Origin: Vicugna vicugna
Lineage: Eukaryota
Length of the DNA: 64,000 bases
Direction: 5' to 3'
Assembly (NCBI GenBank): GCA_013265495.1
Contig: MU061168.1
Span: forward strand, 372,001 to 436,000
Of the stretch, positions 3,935-61,089 are shown one piece after another. Within the stretch, counting starts at the first letter, position 1. Every line of letters starts with the position of its first letter. The notes beneath the pieces were generated by a model. That model had not been told where the DNA came from and ran no database searches. It saw only the letters and a program-made list of their open reading frames with translations. Both the position numbers and the translations under genes were made by a program.

Positions 3935-4162
3935 GTCCATGAGCAGAAATTCTTCTTCTTCAAGGAAATCTTACTTTTGCTCTTAAGGTCTTTCTACTGA
4001 TTGCAAGAGGCCCACTCAGATCATCAAAAGGATAATCTCCTTTACTTAAAGTCAACCGACTATAGATGTTAACCACATCTACAAAATACCCTCACAGCAA
4101 CACCTAGATTCATTTATTCAAATAGCAAGGTACTACAGTTGACACATAAACTGACCATCACA
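3935..4162 (-). mobile_element. MLT2 (ERVL) LTR, 5' part
   Basis: Ends gttgacacataaactgaccatcaca, the reverse complement of the MLT2 start TGTGATGGT...ATGTGTCAAC; also cacagcaacacctaga. Confidence 0.7.
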
Positions 4163-4246
4163 GTTGGGTTAGAGGAAATGAAGTATGTCCCGAGCAAAGG
4201 GACAGTGGGTGCAAAGGCACAGAAGGGAGCTACAGAGCTATGTTGG

Positions 4247-4357
4247 GATGTGTGTGTGTGTATGTCTGAGTGTATCTGAGTGTGTGTGTGTGTGTGTGAG
4301 TGGGTCTGTGTGTGTATCTTTTTCCGTGTGTGTGAATGTGTGTGTCTGTGTGTGTGT
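4247..4357. repeat. Interrupted (TG)n microsatellite
   Basis: About 110 nt of mostly alternating TG; source of the spurious CV/HT-rich ORFs. Confidence 0.95.
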
Positions 4358-5637
4358 TGGTGGAAGGGCAGAGGAATGCACAGAAGCAAAAGTGTGTGCC
4401 AAGAGGCAGCAGAAGCTGAGTCTACAGAGGTGGGCAAGGTCTTATCCTCCACGCTGAGGAGCTTTACTTTACACTGAGGCCTAAAGCAGGTCAGAATCAT
4501 CTCGAATCCCCTAGGCACGTACCATATTTGAAAACGCAAATTCTTTGGCCCCCTCCCAGATCCAATTAATCAGATGAAACCAGAAACCTGTACTATTAAA
4601 AAGCCCCATTTTTCCTCCTATCTGATGACTAGGTTAAGAATCCCTTCTTTAGACAAAGGAAGCCATTGAAGTATTAAATGACAACGTCTAAATTTTGTTG
4701 TCATATAATGATCTTCCTGGTTTAAGTGTTTGTGATTTTGACATGAATAGGATAACTCTTCTGTAGTGGTTCCAAACATCAATGCAGGTGGAACGTGCCT
4801 GGGAAAGACTTGGCTGAGATCCTCCTCAAGATGCTTATCTTTGTAGACACAACCTAATTGGGATCAGAAGGGCTGGGGAGCTGGGAGGCAGAAGGATGGA
4901 GTTCTCTGTCTCTGTGAACTTCATTTCCATGGAGATCCAATAACTCATCAAGCATTTATTTGAGGCTTACAGAGTACCCAGTCCATGCCAGTCTCACTGG
5001 GGGACAGGAAGACAGCAGATGCCAGCTTACAATTTCATAGACACGTGTCTCTGAAATACACGGTTTTGAAAAGAGCAGAACACAGAGCTCTTTTAAGGCA
5101 ATATTTAAGACAAGCATGAGGCAAGATGGTACAGATGCAAAGCATACATGTCACAGACCTTGTCTTGTTTAACAAGGCAACTCACGCAAAGTGCCTAAAA
5201 CACACCCAGCACATAGGCAGCATTAAAAAAAAATGTTGGTGCCTTGCCTTCCTGAGTTACTAATGCCACCACTCTCTTTTCAGGAGTGATAGTCTTTGGG
5301 ATCCTGGAATAAATTTTTAAAAGGAAATAGCATGTTTAGCTTCTAGAATTGTAGGAGATTTTATTAATATAATGATGTTCATCTGGTTGACATAGGAGAC
5401 AGAGCAATGGATGTGCATAGTTGAGCTCCAAACTAGACATTCCAGACAAGGCTTCCATGGGAAATAGAAGTACCCTTTACTCAGGACATTTGTCAGTCCT
5501 CTCTCAATTTAGACCCCTTGAAGCAGACCCTAGGAAATGCTCAGGATCATCACCACCACCTCCAACCCCAGAGAACAGTGTTTTTTTCTGGGGAAGTCCT
5601 CGTTGTTTGAGAGCCTTGCAACATTCAGTACTAAAGG

Positions 5638-16729: not shown

Positions 16730-17090
16730 TGCTGCTTAATCTGACTCTTGGTGTTCAGTCCTTCACTGTAAACCTCCTCTTAGATCAGAAGTTTTCCCAG
16801 GGTAGGCACTTCTTGATTCTTCAGTCTTTGGAACCATAGAGGTGTTGCAGAGGGAAAGCTAAATCTTGGGTTCCGGGCATCCATACCCCCATCAATACAT
16901 AGGCACACTCTGTCAGGAATGGTGAATAGTGAAATGCTTTACTCAGATTCCTCCCCACGGGATCCTACCTTTTCCTGCAACCAGAATTCATCCTATTTCA
17001 GTGAAGCTGCCACAGTTGACTTCCTACTCTGTCCTTGATCATATCAAAATGAAACTCAAAAGCATGGAGTCTGACGTACAGAGATTCTTC
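16730..17090 (-). mobile_element. Degenerate CR1/L3-like LINE endonuclease relic
   Basis: Ordered motifs ESLYVRL (17087-17067), VLMG (16898-16887, same frame), DAR, EVPTLGKLL (from 16812), compared with CR1 ESLWVRI...VLMGDFN...EEPTRG..LL. Confidence 0.4.
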
Positions 17091-17829
17091 TGTGAGGGTT
17101 GAGACTGCTTTCATATCCTGACCCCTTCTTGACCCTCGTTCTGTCTTTGTAACACTTATTCAAAGGCCTGTCATTTCCCATCAAGCTATAAGCCCTTTTA
17201 TGGTAGCATTTACTTCTGTATAACCCATCATACCCATCAGAGCGGCAAATACACGTAAGTACTCAATAAATTACTCTTGGAGATATTATAGTCATTCAGA
17301 CACCACTGGTTGTGGGAATCCACTTCCCAAATCCCCCTCCTATCACCCTGGTTGGCCCACAACCCTTCCTCTCATCATTACCCTCCTATCTTCAGCATCG
17401 CCTGAACTTGAGCTGGGGTAGAGGAGCAAAGATGTTTTAAAGACACCTGCAACAACATGGAGACCACTTGCAAGGTAAGTGAAGCTTATCTTGGCTTCAG
17501 ACTGGAGGAAAGTGGTAAGAAATCTGTGAAGAGATGCTGTTCTCCACCTTTGTGGGAGGAGGAAAAATGAGGGGAGAATTACAGTGAGGATGTGCAGTGG
17601 ACGCACAAATGTGTCTGGTGAGGAATACATGGGCACAGGTGCTTTTAGAATCCAACTTCAAAAAAAAAAAGAACCAACTTCAAACTGTGAATCAGGCACC
17701 TTGAAACATCCATAGATTTTGTTTTGTCTGGTCATCTGACATCGGCAAATAGAACCTCATAAAATAATGCAAAAGTAGAGGTAAGGAGGAGCATATGCTT
17801 GAACAGTATCATTTCAATGATGCAGTAAA

Positions 17830-18175
17830 ATTTTTCCAATTGCAAACAACCTAAATATCAAAACAATCAAGAAATGGTTATGTAAACTGGCACATTTTTT
17901 ACTAGAGGAAACATTATACATTCCTTAAAAACTATGGTTTTAAAGGCCACACAGCACCGTGAAAAATGCTCATCACTGAATGTGAAGTGAAAAAAAGAAA
18001 CTTTGTATGTGCAGTAGGACTGCAACTAGATTTTTTAAGTGGTGTTAAGCAGAAAGACTAGCAGAAAATATACCAACCTGTTAACAGCAACTCTGTTATG
18101 TTATTCGCATTATGGGTGTTTTTATTTTCCTTTTTCCAATTTTTCCAGATTGTGGTTCTATTACCTTTATAATAA
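17830..18175 (+). mobile_element. L1ME-type 3' end fragment
   Basis: aaacaacctaaatatc...gaaaaatgctcat...gaaaatataccaacctgttaacagc...attatgggtgtttttatttt. Confidence 0.65.
18121..18126 (-). terminator. Candidate polyadenylation signal AATAAA
   Basis: First AATAAA I found on the minus strand downstream of the candidate exons; lies inside an old L1 fragment. Confidence 0.3.
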
Positions 18176-18341
18176 GCTACATCACACACAAAAGTTCAAT
18201 TTTTTTTAGTTGGGGAAAGATTCAATCCTAGTGAAGAACAGAAATTTGTTTTTCTGCCCTCATTCACTTCCTTCTTTGTCTCCTTCCTTCCTTTTTTCTT
18301 TCTTTCATGGGACAAGGGGGAACAATTCGAGTTTTAAGAAA

Positions 18342-19525
18342 TCAGAAAGAAGAATATTCTGTTTTACCAATAGTCTGAATTCTTGGAATAACTCTTTTTC
18401 CCTTTTCTGTTACCAAAGGTGGGAAAGGAACCTAGAGAGAAATAGGCACTGAGAGGACCAGAGGCAAGATTGTTCCGGGAGGTGGCCAGTGGGCACAACG
18501 AGTGCAGTGAGGGAGCTGCGGGGAAATGCAGTGACCGAGAGTCCATTTCATGGGTATGCAAGATTTGGGGAAATGAGGGACAAGCATGGGCTAATCAGCT
18601 CTGACCAACTGGGCAAAATACTATTTACAAAACACTAAGGATGCCTTCCTGCTCTATGTAACTCGAATACAAAAAAAGCCCCCACTGAATTTTGCTGGAT
18701 TGTCGTTAAGCAACGCATGCGGATTAAAGGATGAAGCAGGGATTGACTGTTGTCTCTTGTGAGTCTCAGACTTGTGCACACGAACTGTTCCCAGACACTT
18801 GGTTCACTCTTTGGTCATCAGCCGGGTCCTCCACACACCTGGAAACTGATGTCTGCTTAAACACTCCCTGGTGGCGCTTCCCGAACTCAGCCTGGATGCT
18901 TGACAGGCCCACAACTAGCCCATGGTTGGTTTAGAGATTAACTCTTTCCTGTCCTCCTCCTATCAGCCATCCCAACAGCTGTCCTGAACAGCTCCCTGTC
19001 CATGCAGGTTTCCTGGAAGCTCTGCCAGAGAAGAGGCCACATGACCAAGGAAGCCCGTCTATGGCATTCGGGGCTGTGTCTGAGATAGTCAGCCAGAGGT
19101 CACTGCCTGGTCGCAAGATGGTAGAACCTTTGGGACTGGCCAGAGCAGGGGGATCATCACAGTGAAGTCTGGCAGTCCTTGTCCGGGGTGGTGACCAGGA
19201 AGTGCAGAGCCGGAGACTGGCATGGAAGGGGTTACCATGGCAGAGCTCTTGATGCTTGGGGTTATAGGTGCCTAGAAAAGCCTGGAGCAGAAGCTTCTCT
19301 GACAGCAGTCAGGGGCCTCTGCTACCTCTAAATTAATGCTTTCCAGCCCTCAACTCTCAGTCTCATTCATCTGATTTTGGTTTGGAGTTTTGGTTTTTGC
19401 ATTTAAACAGTATGTATAAACACATATACAATGGCTTTGTAATGGAGCCACTTTTCTTGGGTGAATAAGATAAACTTGACAGAAAGCTTAACTCTCCAAC
19501 TCTTGGCACTCACCATCTTTGCCAT
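18342..19525 (-). CDS. Hypothetical spliced 45-aa micropeptide MAKM|APITPSIKSSAM|VPFPPLVTEKGKRVIPRIQTIGKTEYSSF
   Basis: Join of 19525-19514, 19271-19236 and 18431-18342, all phase 0; strong Kozak aggATGG; two upstream ORFs precede it; no homolog recognised. Confidence 0.15.
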
Positions 19526-19886
19526 CCTTGCCTCCTCTTCACAATGCTGGTTGATCTGTGCTCCCAATCAGCATGGACACCTCTAGGTGGAGCACGATCA
19601 CGTACGGGGTATCTACCAAGATAGCTCCCATGAGGGCTGGTTCTTTCTGGGGTAGTCCATACTGTGAGCCAGCATAGAAAAGGCAAGAAGAACCCTCATC
19701 CCAGAGTCATGAGTGACAAAAACTACAGGTGTCTGAACGTGTGTTGTGATTCAGGATCTCACTGAGGGCCCAGTGATCCTCCATCCTAGATCCCACCCCG
19801 AAGGGTCAAGAGATCTCTGGCTCCATTTTACTCACCTCCGTCTGATCAGGACGAGATGATGCCTTAGGACTGCTCTTTACTTTCTT

Positions 19887-19967
19887 TAACGTCTCCTTTC
19901 TGAACCCTTTTTATATCCGTAGATTTTCCTCCCTCCCCTTTCCAGGTATGGGATCGTCCATCAAAGG
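19887..19967 (-). promoter_or_regulatory. Candidate core promoter: TATA box, purine-rich GGAAA/GGGAGG box and TCF/LEF site
   Basis: Minus strand reads CCTTTGATG(19967-19959)...TGGAAAGGGGAGGGAGGAAAATCTACGGATATAAAAAGG; pyrimidine-A start candidate 28 nt after the TATA. Confidence 0.55.
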
Positions 19968-20076
19968 CAGCCACCAAGAAACCATGTACACTGGCAGTGT
20001 ATACTTTGGTGGGAACTATTCTAGTGGTGTTTCTCAAACAGGACATTTAAAAAATATCCATAAGTATCCCTCGGAA

Positions 20077-21034
20077 TTATCTCAGATGGAGCACAGAAAA
20101 CAACAATAGTTACCTGCTTTTTAATATCAGGTAGACATACTAAAATAAAATACAATAAATAAAATACATACTAAATAAATAAAATAAAGCAACATAAACT
20201 AGTGATTTTATCACTAAGATAGGTAGTTAAAATAATTCAAAGAAAATTCTTATTAAGTCATAATATGGTAGTACTCTAGTATTAACAAAAATCATATAAA
20301 AAGCAGGACTTGATAACTGAAATTTGGGAAACCCTCTGTGGATTACCTCCTTTAAGTAACCACACGTTAAGCCTAAACCTGGCTGGGAATGAAAGGATTT
20401 GTCCCTATTTAATTCCCATCAAGCAGGCTGGGGAGGCGATCTTAGGGGAGAGTGGCCTTCTGGCCCTGCTGATTCGTGCCCACGGACCGAATCCCTCGCT
20501 GCTGAGATGTTAAGTCTAGCCTTATTTCAGCAGCACAATGATTGGGAGCGCTGCCAAGAACACAACAGACTATCCTGCAGCTGTTATCTCGTTTGTATGA
20601 GTGATATGAAGAACGCAGCACAATTTAATATGCCATCTAATACTTTTATTCTTATCTCATCAGTAGGGCAGGTAGTAGCATACATGTTTGAAAGCCATTG
20701 CAGATGGGTATGGGGGAGGACCCCAAGAAATGATGTTAGCTGCTATCTGAGCTGAGTGAAACGATCTGAGCACAGATATAATTTTATAAAGGCAATCTCA
20801 CTTGTATCTTCACCAGTAAGATCTTAATCACACCAGGTAACGGGGGTGGATATCGCCTCTCCTGGTTATCTGGGGGTGGGATGACAGTATTGTCATCCCT
20901 GGGAGAATGGTTATCTGTTATTTCATTTGTAAGAGACCAACAAGAACGTTATCAGGGCATTTGTAACCAAATGGGTGCCGCTCAGAGTGATAAAAGAGGG
21001 AGGAGGCGGCTCATCTCCAAGGAGGTGGAGATAA
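20077..21034. promoter_or_regulatory. Homotypic GATA (WGATAR) motif cluster, candidate enhancer
   Basis: 12 sites at 20077, 20208, 20217, 20311, 20584, 20652, 20743, 20866, 20911, 20949, 20988, 21029, in sequence I could not assign to a repeat. Confidence 0.55.
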
Positions 21035-35602: not shown

Positions 35603-35726
35603 GAGGGGGGAGGTAATTAGGTTGACTTACTTATGTATTTATTTTTTAATAGAGGTACTGGGGATTGAACTCAGGACCCTGTGCATGCTAAGCCAGCACT
35701 CTACCACCAAGCTATACCCTCCCCTC
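35603..35726 (-). mobile_element. Camelid Vic-1-type SINE
   Basis: ggggattgaactcaggaccctgtgcatgctaagccagcactctaccaccaagctataccctcccc. Confidence 0.9.
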
Positions 35727-35728
35727 TA

Positions 35729-35896
35729 NNNNNNNNNNNNNNNNNNNNNNNNNNNNNNNNNNNNNNNNNNNNNNNNNNNNNNNNNNNNNNNNNNNNNNNN
35801 NNNNNNNNNNNNNNNNNNNNNNNNNNNNNNNNNNNNNNNNNNNNNNNNNNNNNNNNNNNNNNNNNNNNNNNNNNNNNNNNNNNNNNNNNNNNNNNN
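35729..35896. other. N-run (168 nt)
   Basis: Unresolved bases next to a SINE head. Confidence 1.
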
Positions 35897-37480: not shown

Positions 37481-37724
37481 TTTCTGCCAGAGCCCTTTGG
37501 GATGTATCACATAGTCCTCTGTGCATGAGCACAGTCCCTATGGACCAGAGATGTGTGGTATGTTTTTGCTGTTCATATTCACAGCCTTCAGTCAACCTGG
37601 GGTATGTGGGGAACATATCAAACCTCTTATGATTGCCTCACTCCCAGAAAAATTAATGTGTATAGTCTCTCTTTCAGTCTTTCAGTCCATTCATCAATTC
37701 TTACTCCATCCTTCTACAGGTAAT

Positions 37725-37745
37725 TTATTTTATTTATTTACTTAC

Positions 37746-37808
<63 letters not shown>
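37725..37808. repeat. (TTTA)n microsatellite
   Basis: About 20 partly imperfect units. Confidence 0.95.
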
Positions 37809-38701
37809 TTGTATATACTGCCTGAGAGCCTATGTAAGTATAAATGAAAATATGTTCTTGTTTGTCTCCATTTTCCAATAGAAGTCAAAATTAATGTACA
37901 CACTGCTCTGCTCTTGCTTTTTTCACAGAATAATGGATGCTGGAACGCTTTCCATATCATTCGAGAGTTTCCTCATGATCGTATATAGCTGCATTGTATT
38001 TCATTATAGATGTAGCATGATTTATTTAACCAGTCCTTTACTGATGAATCATACACAGGAAATCTCTACCCACAATCTATGTGAAGCTAGGCAAAAGCTC
38101 TTCTGCTTCCAATATTCACCTAAGCCATTGTTCTATTAGCTGGAAAAGGGAGTGTCATTTCCTCCTATCTTTTTTCCAATAAGTTTACCCCAACCCCAAC
38201 TTAGATCACTGTTTATAATGTGATAAGAATGGGTGGATTAAGAGAAACCTGAGAACCCACCTTCTCCAACCACAGAGAGCTTCCTCCTTGGTAGCCTAGC
38301 CAAATTTGAGATTGTCCCGTTCCTGCACACACCTGTTCATATGTTTCCTGATTCCCAATTATAAAAGAATAAGACTCACATTTATTAAAAAAGAAGACAT
38401 GTGAAGATTTTTTACCTTTATAATAATAATTTTTAAATATACATTTTTTTCCCCTGAGGATGTAAGTTGAAGGTTAAGATAGTCTTATAACAAATGTATC
38501 CGGGGTAGCCTGATGCTGTATCTCTTTCTCTAAGAACTTATCCCAGTCCATAATTGTCACTGAGGGAGTGGGTCAGGGGGCTATGTTAGTACCACATATA
38601 CTTGACGACACACCACACTTTTTTGATCCAAGAATGGATAAACAACCCAAAGGAGCACCAAGATTAAACTGGCCAGGGACAAGTAAATTTTTCTCAATCA
38701 C

Positions 38702-54985: not shown

Positions 54986-55147
54986 AGGAGAGTGCATAGC
55001 GCAGTGGTTAGAGTACATGCTTAGCATGCACGAGGTCCTGGCTTCAATCCCCAGTGCCTCCATTAAAATAACTAACTAAATAAATAAACCTAATTATCTC
55101 CCTCTACAAAAAAATTCCACAAACGAAATAAATAAAATACTTTTTTT
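54986..55147 (+). mobile_element. Camelid Vic-1-type SINE
   Basis: catagcgcagtggttagag...ggcttcaatccccagt; perfect 13-bp TSD aaatctgtcccag at 54973-54985 and 55148-55160. Confidence 0.92.

Positions 55148-59949: not shown

Positions 59950-59953
<4 letters not shown>

Positions 59954-59993
<40 letters not shown>
59954..59993. repeat. (GT)20 microsatellite
   Basis: Perfect dinucleotide run. Confidence 0.97.
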
Positions 59994-59995
<2 letters not shown>

Positions 59996-61089
59996 GTGGG
60001 TTGCTGAATGTGGGAAAGGTCTGAAGGAAAAGGTTTTGCTCCATCTCCCTCTGTATGTACGGAAGTATTCCCCTGAGAGCTCAGATAGGCTGAGTAGAGA
60101 GTGGAGCTAAAGGACATTGAACCAATGTGCTTCATTTCTGGCCAATCAAAGAGTCAAAAAAAGAAGACAAAAATGCATGAGGAGAGTTCCTGAAGACTCC
60201 TGACTTTTGAATGTGTATGTTAAGGCTGGGGGCAGGCAGAGGAAGAAGAATTTAACTCAGGTTGGCAAACATGGTTAAAGGCCAAATAGAGAGCCAGTGT
60301 GCTCAGGAGGTAATGTGACAGAAGTGCAGAAACTGATGGTTTCTAATTCCTGCATGGTATTTTATGCCAAGTATGCCTCATATAACTGTTGCTTAATTTA
60401 TAGTTTTTCACTCTTCTTTTTTTCTTTTCTTTTTTCTTTTCTTTTTTTTTTTTTTATCATATAAAGCCAAAGAGTAGCTCTCACCAGAGTTATATCTGAA
60501 ATGTGGTAGCCAGGACTTGAAGAGCACATTAAGACCTTCGCCACCTAGGAAGGGATCACCTATGGAGATGACTAATTCAAATTGCCTATAGATCGCTCCA
60601 GTTGGATAGATGGAGCAGGGAAAAATAATGGTAGACATTGCAAGAGAACACAGACAGAGTCTGCCAGACTACTTAAGCTGAGGTCACAGACTTGAAAGTT
60701 CAGGAGACCAAGGCAGTGAGAGTTTACAGTATCAGAGAGGAGACTGCAGCAAGAAAACACTGGAGATATGCAGAAATGCCCCTGTGAGTGTTCACCAGGT
60801 ACTAATCAGCAAATGCATGTGAAAAAATACTCTCTGAGGCTAAGAAATGAGCTTTTCAAAAAGATTAGAAGGGGCAGTATTTGGTGGTCACACGGAATGA
60901 GGAACAGTGCTTGCTCCCACCAACCAGACTGGAAAACATCATTCATGAAATAGTGGGTTGAGTACTCAGAAAGATCTTGCCTCAGTAGGGGGGAAATTAG
61001 CCCTAGGTTAAATGATGCTCTGATTTTTGTCTGATAAATCTTAAAAGCACGAATGATCAAACTGTTTCCAAATAATTTAACTGCATCTC

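Follow-up and report, generated by a model that had tools for sequence, protein, structure and literature searches.

The locus lies within positions 18100–19967 of the analysed window, which is the whole 64-kb stretch of DNA, and its candidate signals are on the minus strand. The candidate TATA box, TATAAAA at 19915–19909, is located ~25–30 nt upstream of a proposed start at ~19887. The proposed exon 1 (19887–19836) consists of 52 nt without an ATG and ends in GAG/GTGAGT (donor D1; the slash marks the proposed exon border). D1 scored 7.87, which placed it in the top 0.1% of the GT sites in the window. This score and those below are approximate, as they come from a rough position-weight matrix for donors and acceptors, applied to 6320 GT and 9229 AG sites on both strands of the 64-kb window. 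The proposed intron 1 (19835–19662; 174 nt) ends in ...ctcacag; its CAG acceptor at 19661 is weak (score −0.66, the 82nd percentile of AG sites), and a pyrimidine tract lies 15–30 nt before this acceptor. The intron is followed by the proposed exon 2 (19661–19514; 148 nt), which ends in ATG/GTGAGT at donor D2, scoring 6.28 and belonging to the top 0.3% of GT sites in the window. The proposed intron 2 (19513–19272; 242 nt) contains cctgac, places CTGAC ~38 nt upstream of the terminal ttttctag, and leads to an acceptor at 19271 with a score of 2.72 (the 95th percentile of AG sites). A competing acceptor located 10 nt further upstream scored 4.35 and would start the exon at 19281.

Several arrangements are conceivable at the 3′ side of the locus. 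The proposed short form of exon 3 (19271–19236) is 36 nt long and ends at the weak donor ATG/GTAACC, which scored 0.75 and reached the 91st percentile of GT sites. Between the start of exon 3 and the acceptor at 18431, we found an alternative internal exon candidate that the original prediction had not listed (19021–18839; 183 nt), bounded by the acceptor ctcttctctggcag with a score of 6.34 and the donor CAG/GTGTGT with a score of 6.09. The candidate terminal exon (18431–18100) follows the strong acceptor cctatttctctctag, whose score of 6.32 fell in the top 0.6% of AG sites, and it includes an AATAAA at 18126–18121 with a GT/T-rich stretch downstream. Direct reading of the minus strand recovered every one of the motifs that the original prediction had placed here, namely the TATAAAA, the ATG-free 52-nt stretch ending in GAG/GTGAGT, the 174-nt interval with its CAG end, the 148-nt stretch ending in ATG/GTGAGT, the 242-nt interval with CTGAC and ttttctag, the ATG ending at 19236 in front of GTAACC, cctatttctctctag directly before 18431, and the AATAAA.

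TATAAAA occurred 20 times in the 64-kb window when both strands were counted, and 19900–20300 showed neither a CpG island nor any further promoter feature. On the plus strand, the region's highest-scoring acceptor, TCCCTCCCCTTTCCAG/GT at 19946 (score 9.85), corresponds to the reverse complement of a G-rich box that immediately precedes the TATA motif; this acceptor did not pair with any plus-strand donor into a plausible exon. The role of a snoRNA or miRNA host gene was considered and rejected, as no Rfam family was detected and the introns folded like their shuffled counterparts. The Rfam E-value search of 17500–20500 returned only matches far below threshold, the best being SNORA61, whose 23 bits compare with a gathering score of 74, and the folding z-scores of introns 1 and 2 were −0.58, which is not unusual, and −1.80, respectively, neither intron folding better than shuffles.

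The original prediction had cautioned that isolated splice signals arise by chance, and the signals of this locus exceed chance only in part. We defined a core chain as TATAAA followed by a donor with a score of 6 or more within 40–200 nt and by a second such donor within 100–600 nt. The real window contained this chain once, at the present locus, and 9% of first-order Markov shuffles of the window contained it at least once. With this chance rate, similar chains are expected across the many windows scanned, and the sequence alone is therefore too weak to carry the claim. More generally, neat chains of TATA box, donor, acceptor, and AATAAA need junction-level RNA evidence before a gene is called.

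The RNA evidence is indirect and came from two k-mer searches of assembled RNA-seq contigs from tissues of this animal, which count the held words without resolving their positions. One search covered the whole stretch 18100–19967 with 186 sampled 31-mer words, and the other was confined to 19272–19835 (intron 1, exon 2, and intron 2; 564 nt) with 53 sampled words. Logan discards k-mers that occur a single time in a run (PMC12424806), so every word counted here had been sequenced two or more times in the run concerned. At least 12 RNA-type runs from several studies held parts of 18100–19967 when both searches were taken together. Over the whole stretch, eleven RNA-type runs held 0.05–0.21 of the words, none exceeding 21%, and the DNA-like (whole-genome-looking) runs of organism B held 0.85–0.98. 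The best holders, X1, X2, and X4, carry the label reproductive system and belong to study P1; study P2 contributed X3, X5, X6, and X8. Within 19272–19835, nine of the twelve RNA runs held words, at 13–32% and never above 32%, and the DNA-like runs held 0.89–1.00. The counts in this interval were 17 words for X1, 16 for X6, 11 for X2, and 10 for X11, followed by 9 each for X5, X8, and X24 and 7 each for X7 and X9.

Subtraction of the interval search from the whole-stretch search showed how the held words were distributed. X6 had 16 of its 16–17 words inside 19272–19835 (hypergeometric probability 4e-9), and all 9–10 words of X11 fell inside the same interval (7e-6). X3 and X4 had the opposite pattern, with at most 2 of their 22–23 words inside, and X10 held 13 words overall with fewer than 3 inside. 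The counts outside the interval were 22–23 for X1 and X2 and 20–23 for X3 and X4, these four runs coming from two studies, and the inside count peaked at 16–17 in two runs from different studies. Thus, the RNA holds at least two discrete blocks rather than covering the whole stretch. The inside block comprises at most 16–17 sampled words, or ~150–200 nt within 19272–19835, and the outside block, seen in X1–X4, comprises ~22 sampled words, or ~250 nt. This clustering of the held words looks exon-like rather than typical of unspliced RNA, and recurring count plateaus are what would be expected from defined exons. Some runs held one block only, as illustrated by X6 versus X3 in P2 and by X11 versus X4 in P1, and the two blocks may therefore be separate RNAs. 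Exact scans of JGI metagenome contigs, an uninformative source here, matched neither the 26-mer spanning the spliced exons 2 and 3 nor the genomic sequence at D2.

Exon 2 is a plausible and the best candidate for the block held within 19272–19835. No plus-strand acceptor–donor pair making an exon fitted this interval, and the minus-strand reading is supported by the fact that only this strand offers a splice-bounded exon there. Exon 2 alone predicts ~12 inside words; a count of 16 or more would arise with a probability of ~0.1 and one of 16–17 with ~0.05–0.1, which implies that the observed 16–17 words reflect lucky sampling, a longer exon, or some intron sequence held in the RNA. For exon 1, only ~2 sampled words are expected, and the k-mer data are consequently silent on it. 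The long form of exon 3 claimed by the original prediction, running from 19271 down to the poly(A) site, did not withstand the word counts and is disfavoured: such an exon (19271 to ~18105) predicts ~114 sampled words, and the RNA runs held at most ~23 outside 19272–19835. Most economically, the second block would lie within the candidate terminal exon 18431–18100, and the internal candidate 19021–18839, judged by its splice signals, may form part of this block.

The coding potential of the locus was examined in the spliced model of the original prediction, which contains ORFs of 15, 30, and 64 aa. The 64-aa ORF (MAKM...) spans the exon 2/3 junction, and its ATG carries an A at −3 and a G at +4; two upstream ATGs precede it, the first likewise in a strong context. 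Use of the donor at 19236 with the acceptor at 18431 would convert it into a 45-aa variant. Word-based searches of 5.8 billion protein clusters returned no homologue for any of three queries, namely the portion of the 64-aa ORF encoded by exon 3, the reading frame that stays open through exon 2, and the longest local ORF, an 80-aa plus-strand frame at 18210–18449. At E≤0.1, none of ten local ORFs from both strands fell into a Pfam family, the 30-aa exon 2 ORF had no exact match on record, and the N-terminus of the 64-aa ORF did not resemble a signal peptide by eye. The original prediction had offered a lncRNA, a micropeptide gene, and a unitary pseudogene as possible identities, and the last two found no support in these homologue and Pfam results. 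The lncRNA option held up in part: the presence of parts of the locus in RNA, the clustering into blocks, and the failure to detect coding homology all fit a lncRNA, with the long exon 3 disfavoured.

Taken together, these data tentatively favor a low-abundance, tissue-restricted, spliced non-coding Pol II transcript from the minus strand, to which we assign a probability of about 0.42. The strand, exon borders, junctions, start site, and poly(A) site of this putative RNA are those predicted from the motifs described above. Transcription could possibly start at the TATA box and yield exon 1, and exon 2 (~19661–19514), closed by the strong donor ATG/GTGAGT, would constitute one expressed block. 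A second block of ~250 nt would lie elsewhere in 18100–19271. In the preferred chain, the donor at 19514 would be joined to the acceptor at 18431, with or without the exon 19021–18839 in between, and the transcript would end at the AATAAA at 18126–18121; a long exon 3 starting at 19271 would not be the preferred form. This reading is favored by the ranks of D1, D2, and the acceptor at 18431, which are in the top 0.1–0.6% of their kind in the window, by the clustered RNA k-mers, and by the window-wide GC and TA skews, which lean towards transcription from the minus strand. It is weakened by the low scores of the acceptors at 19661 and 19271 and of the donor at 19236, by the 9% rate in shuffles, and by the excess of the inside block (16–17 words) over the ~12 words expected from exon 2.

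The strongest rival explanation, which we regard as somewhat unlikely, is that the motifs are fortuitous and that the RNA signal is background or nascent RNA, for example transcriptional noise or patches of pre-mRNA from a long host transcript on the minus strand, with the blocks representing a few read pairs. The frequency of the core chain in shuffles and the very large number of windows scanned speak for this explanation, as does the weakness of two of the three acceptor/donor pairs. The RNA shares were low (0.05–0.21), and the inside counts formed a graded series (17, 16, 11, 10, 9, 9, 9, 7, and 7 words). Blocks of 150–250 nt have the size of one sequenced fragment and could be produced by a few overlapping or duplicated pre-mRNA reads. 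The occurrence of different blocks in runs of one study and the GC and TA skews, which hint at a minus-strand unit spanning the window, point in the same direction. However, the counts recurred, at ~22 words outside in four runs and 16–17 inside in two, and words from the 564-nt interval around exon 2 were found in nine of twelve RNA runs; plateaus and recurrence of this kind are not expected of random fragments.

A second alternative, which appears improbable, assigns the blocks, as internal or alternative exons, to a longer gene or lncRNA on the minus strand and places its promoter upstream of 19967; in this case, the TATA box and exon 1 would be fortuitous. The motif GGTGAGT was found 8 times on the minus strand of the window (59726, 53521, 52897, 28885, 19836, 19514, 11020, and 6312) and twice on the opposite strand. 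Over the whole window, the skews of the plus strand were −0.039 for GC and −0.011 for TA, with GC skew negative over most of 1–56 kb. The skews and the strand bias of GGTGAGT hint weakly that the window may lie within a long minus-strand transcription unit. The failure to find a CpG island or a further promoter feature at 19900–20300 and the lack of k-mer information on exon 1 agree with a promoter located elsewhere. On the other hand, the window yielded no recognisable coding exon or known gene, the acceptor at 19661, which any upstream exon would need, is weak, and the AATAAA at 18126–18121 following a strong acceptor suggests that the transcript would end at the locus.

The possibility that an LTR or another transposable element supplied the TATA box, a donor, or the poly(A) signal was considered as well, as a TATA box followed by a donor is an arrangement typical downstream of retroviral LTRs. 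We regard this origin as quite unlikely. Self-comparison of the 64-kb window revealed no further copy of any part of 17000–21000, one short low-complexity match excepted, and the local ORFs carried no retroviral or transposase Pfam domain. Moreover, the distance of 1.8 kb from the TATA box to the AATAAA is too large for one solo LTR, and no primer-binding-site-like sequence was seen by eye after exon 1. The low-complexity match, (TTTA/TATTT)n at 20130–20190 and 37724–37814, was the sole internal similarity of the 17–21-kb region.

It is highly improbable that the 64-aa ORF or its 45-aa variant marks a small protein-coding gene or unitary pseudogene, despite the favorable context of the ATG, given three ORF pieces without homologues among the 5.8 billion clusters, ten local ORFs without a Pfam family, two upstream ATGs, an N-terminus unlike a signal peptide by eye, and word counts disfavouring the exon 3 that holds most of the ORF. 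An equally slim chance is left for a lineage-restricted, TATA-started gene of the reproductive tract encoding a new micropeptide, whether of 64 aa or of 45 aa via the acceptor at 18431.

The favored non-coding transcript would have close counterparts among known systems. Mammalian lncRNAs are intergenic or intronic Pol II products with few short exons and low, tissue-restricted expression, often in testis or the reproductive tract, and those of low abundance and restricted expression are an abundant kind. The locus resembles them in its few short candidate exons, canonical GT–AG signals, and AATAAA, in having no conserved ORF, and in its low RNA-seq representation, which was best in reproductive-system runs. 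With TATAAAA ~28 nt ahead of the proposed start and no CpG island, the locus also recalls the TATA-box core promoters that small, tissue-restricted genes use, except that its motif is one of 20 in the window. The locus also shares features with cryptic or "poison" exons in long transcription units, being an isolated block with one strong donor, a weak acceptor, low abundance, and a skew suggestive of a surrounding minus-strand unit; unlike such exons, it has no host gene found in the window. Nothing pointed to an unusual mechanism, and the RNA, if real, would be an ordinary lncRNA. A camelid-type genome would thereby gain a further unannotated lncRNA of low abundance and tissue-restricted expression, which would aid annotation and leave concepts unchanged.

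Elsewhere in the 64-kb window, we found no clear CpG island and no convincing coding ORF of at least 90 aa. The only Rfam matches at the gathering score were two tRNA-like matches far from the locus, at 35650–35721 on the minus strand (31.2 bits) and 54990–55062 on the plus strand (30.3 bits), both just over this score. The former adjoins an N-masked stretch at 35729–35896, and both look like the heads of tRNA-derived SINEs rather than tRNA genes. The TG/CA dinucleotide microsatellites at 4114–4539 and ~59950–60000 gave rise to spurious long ORFs (HTHT... or CVCV...).
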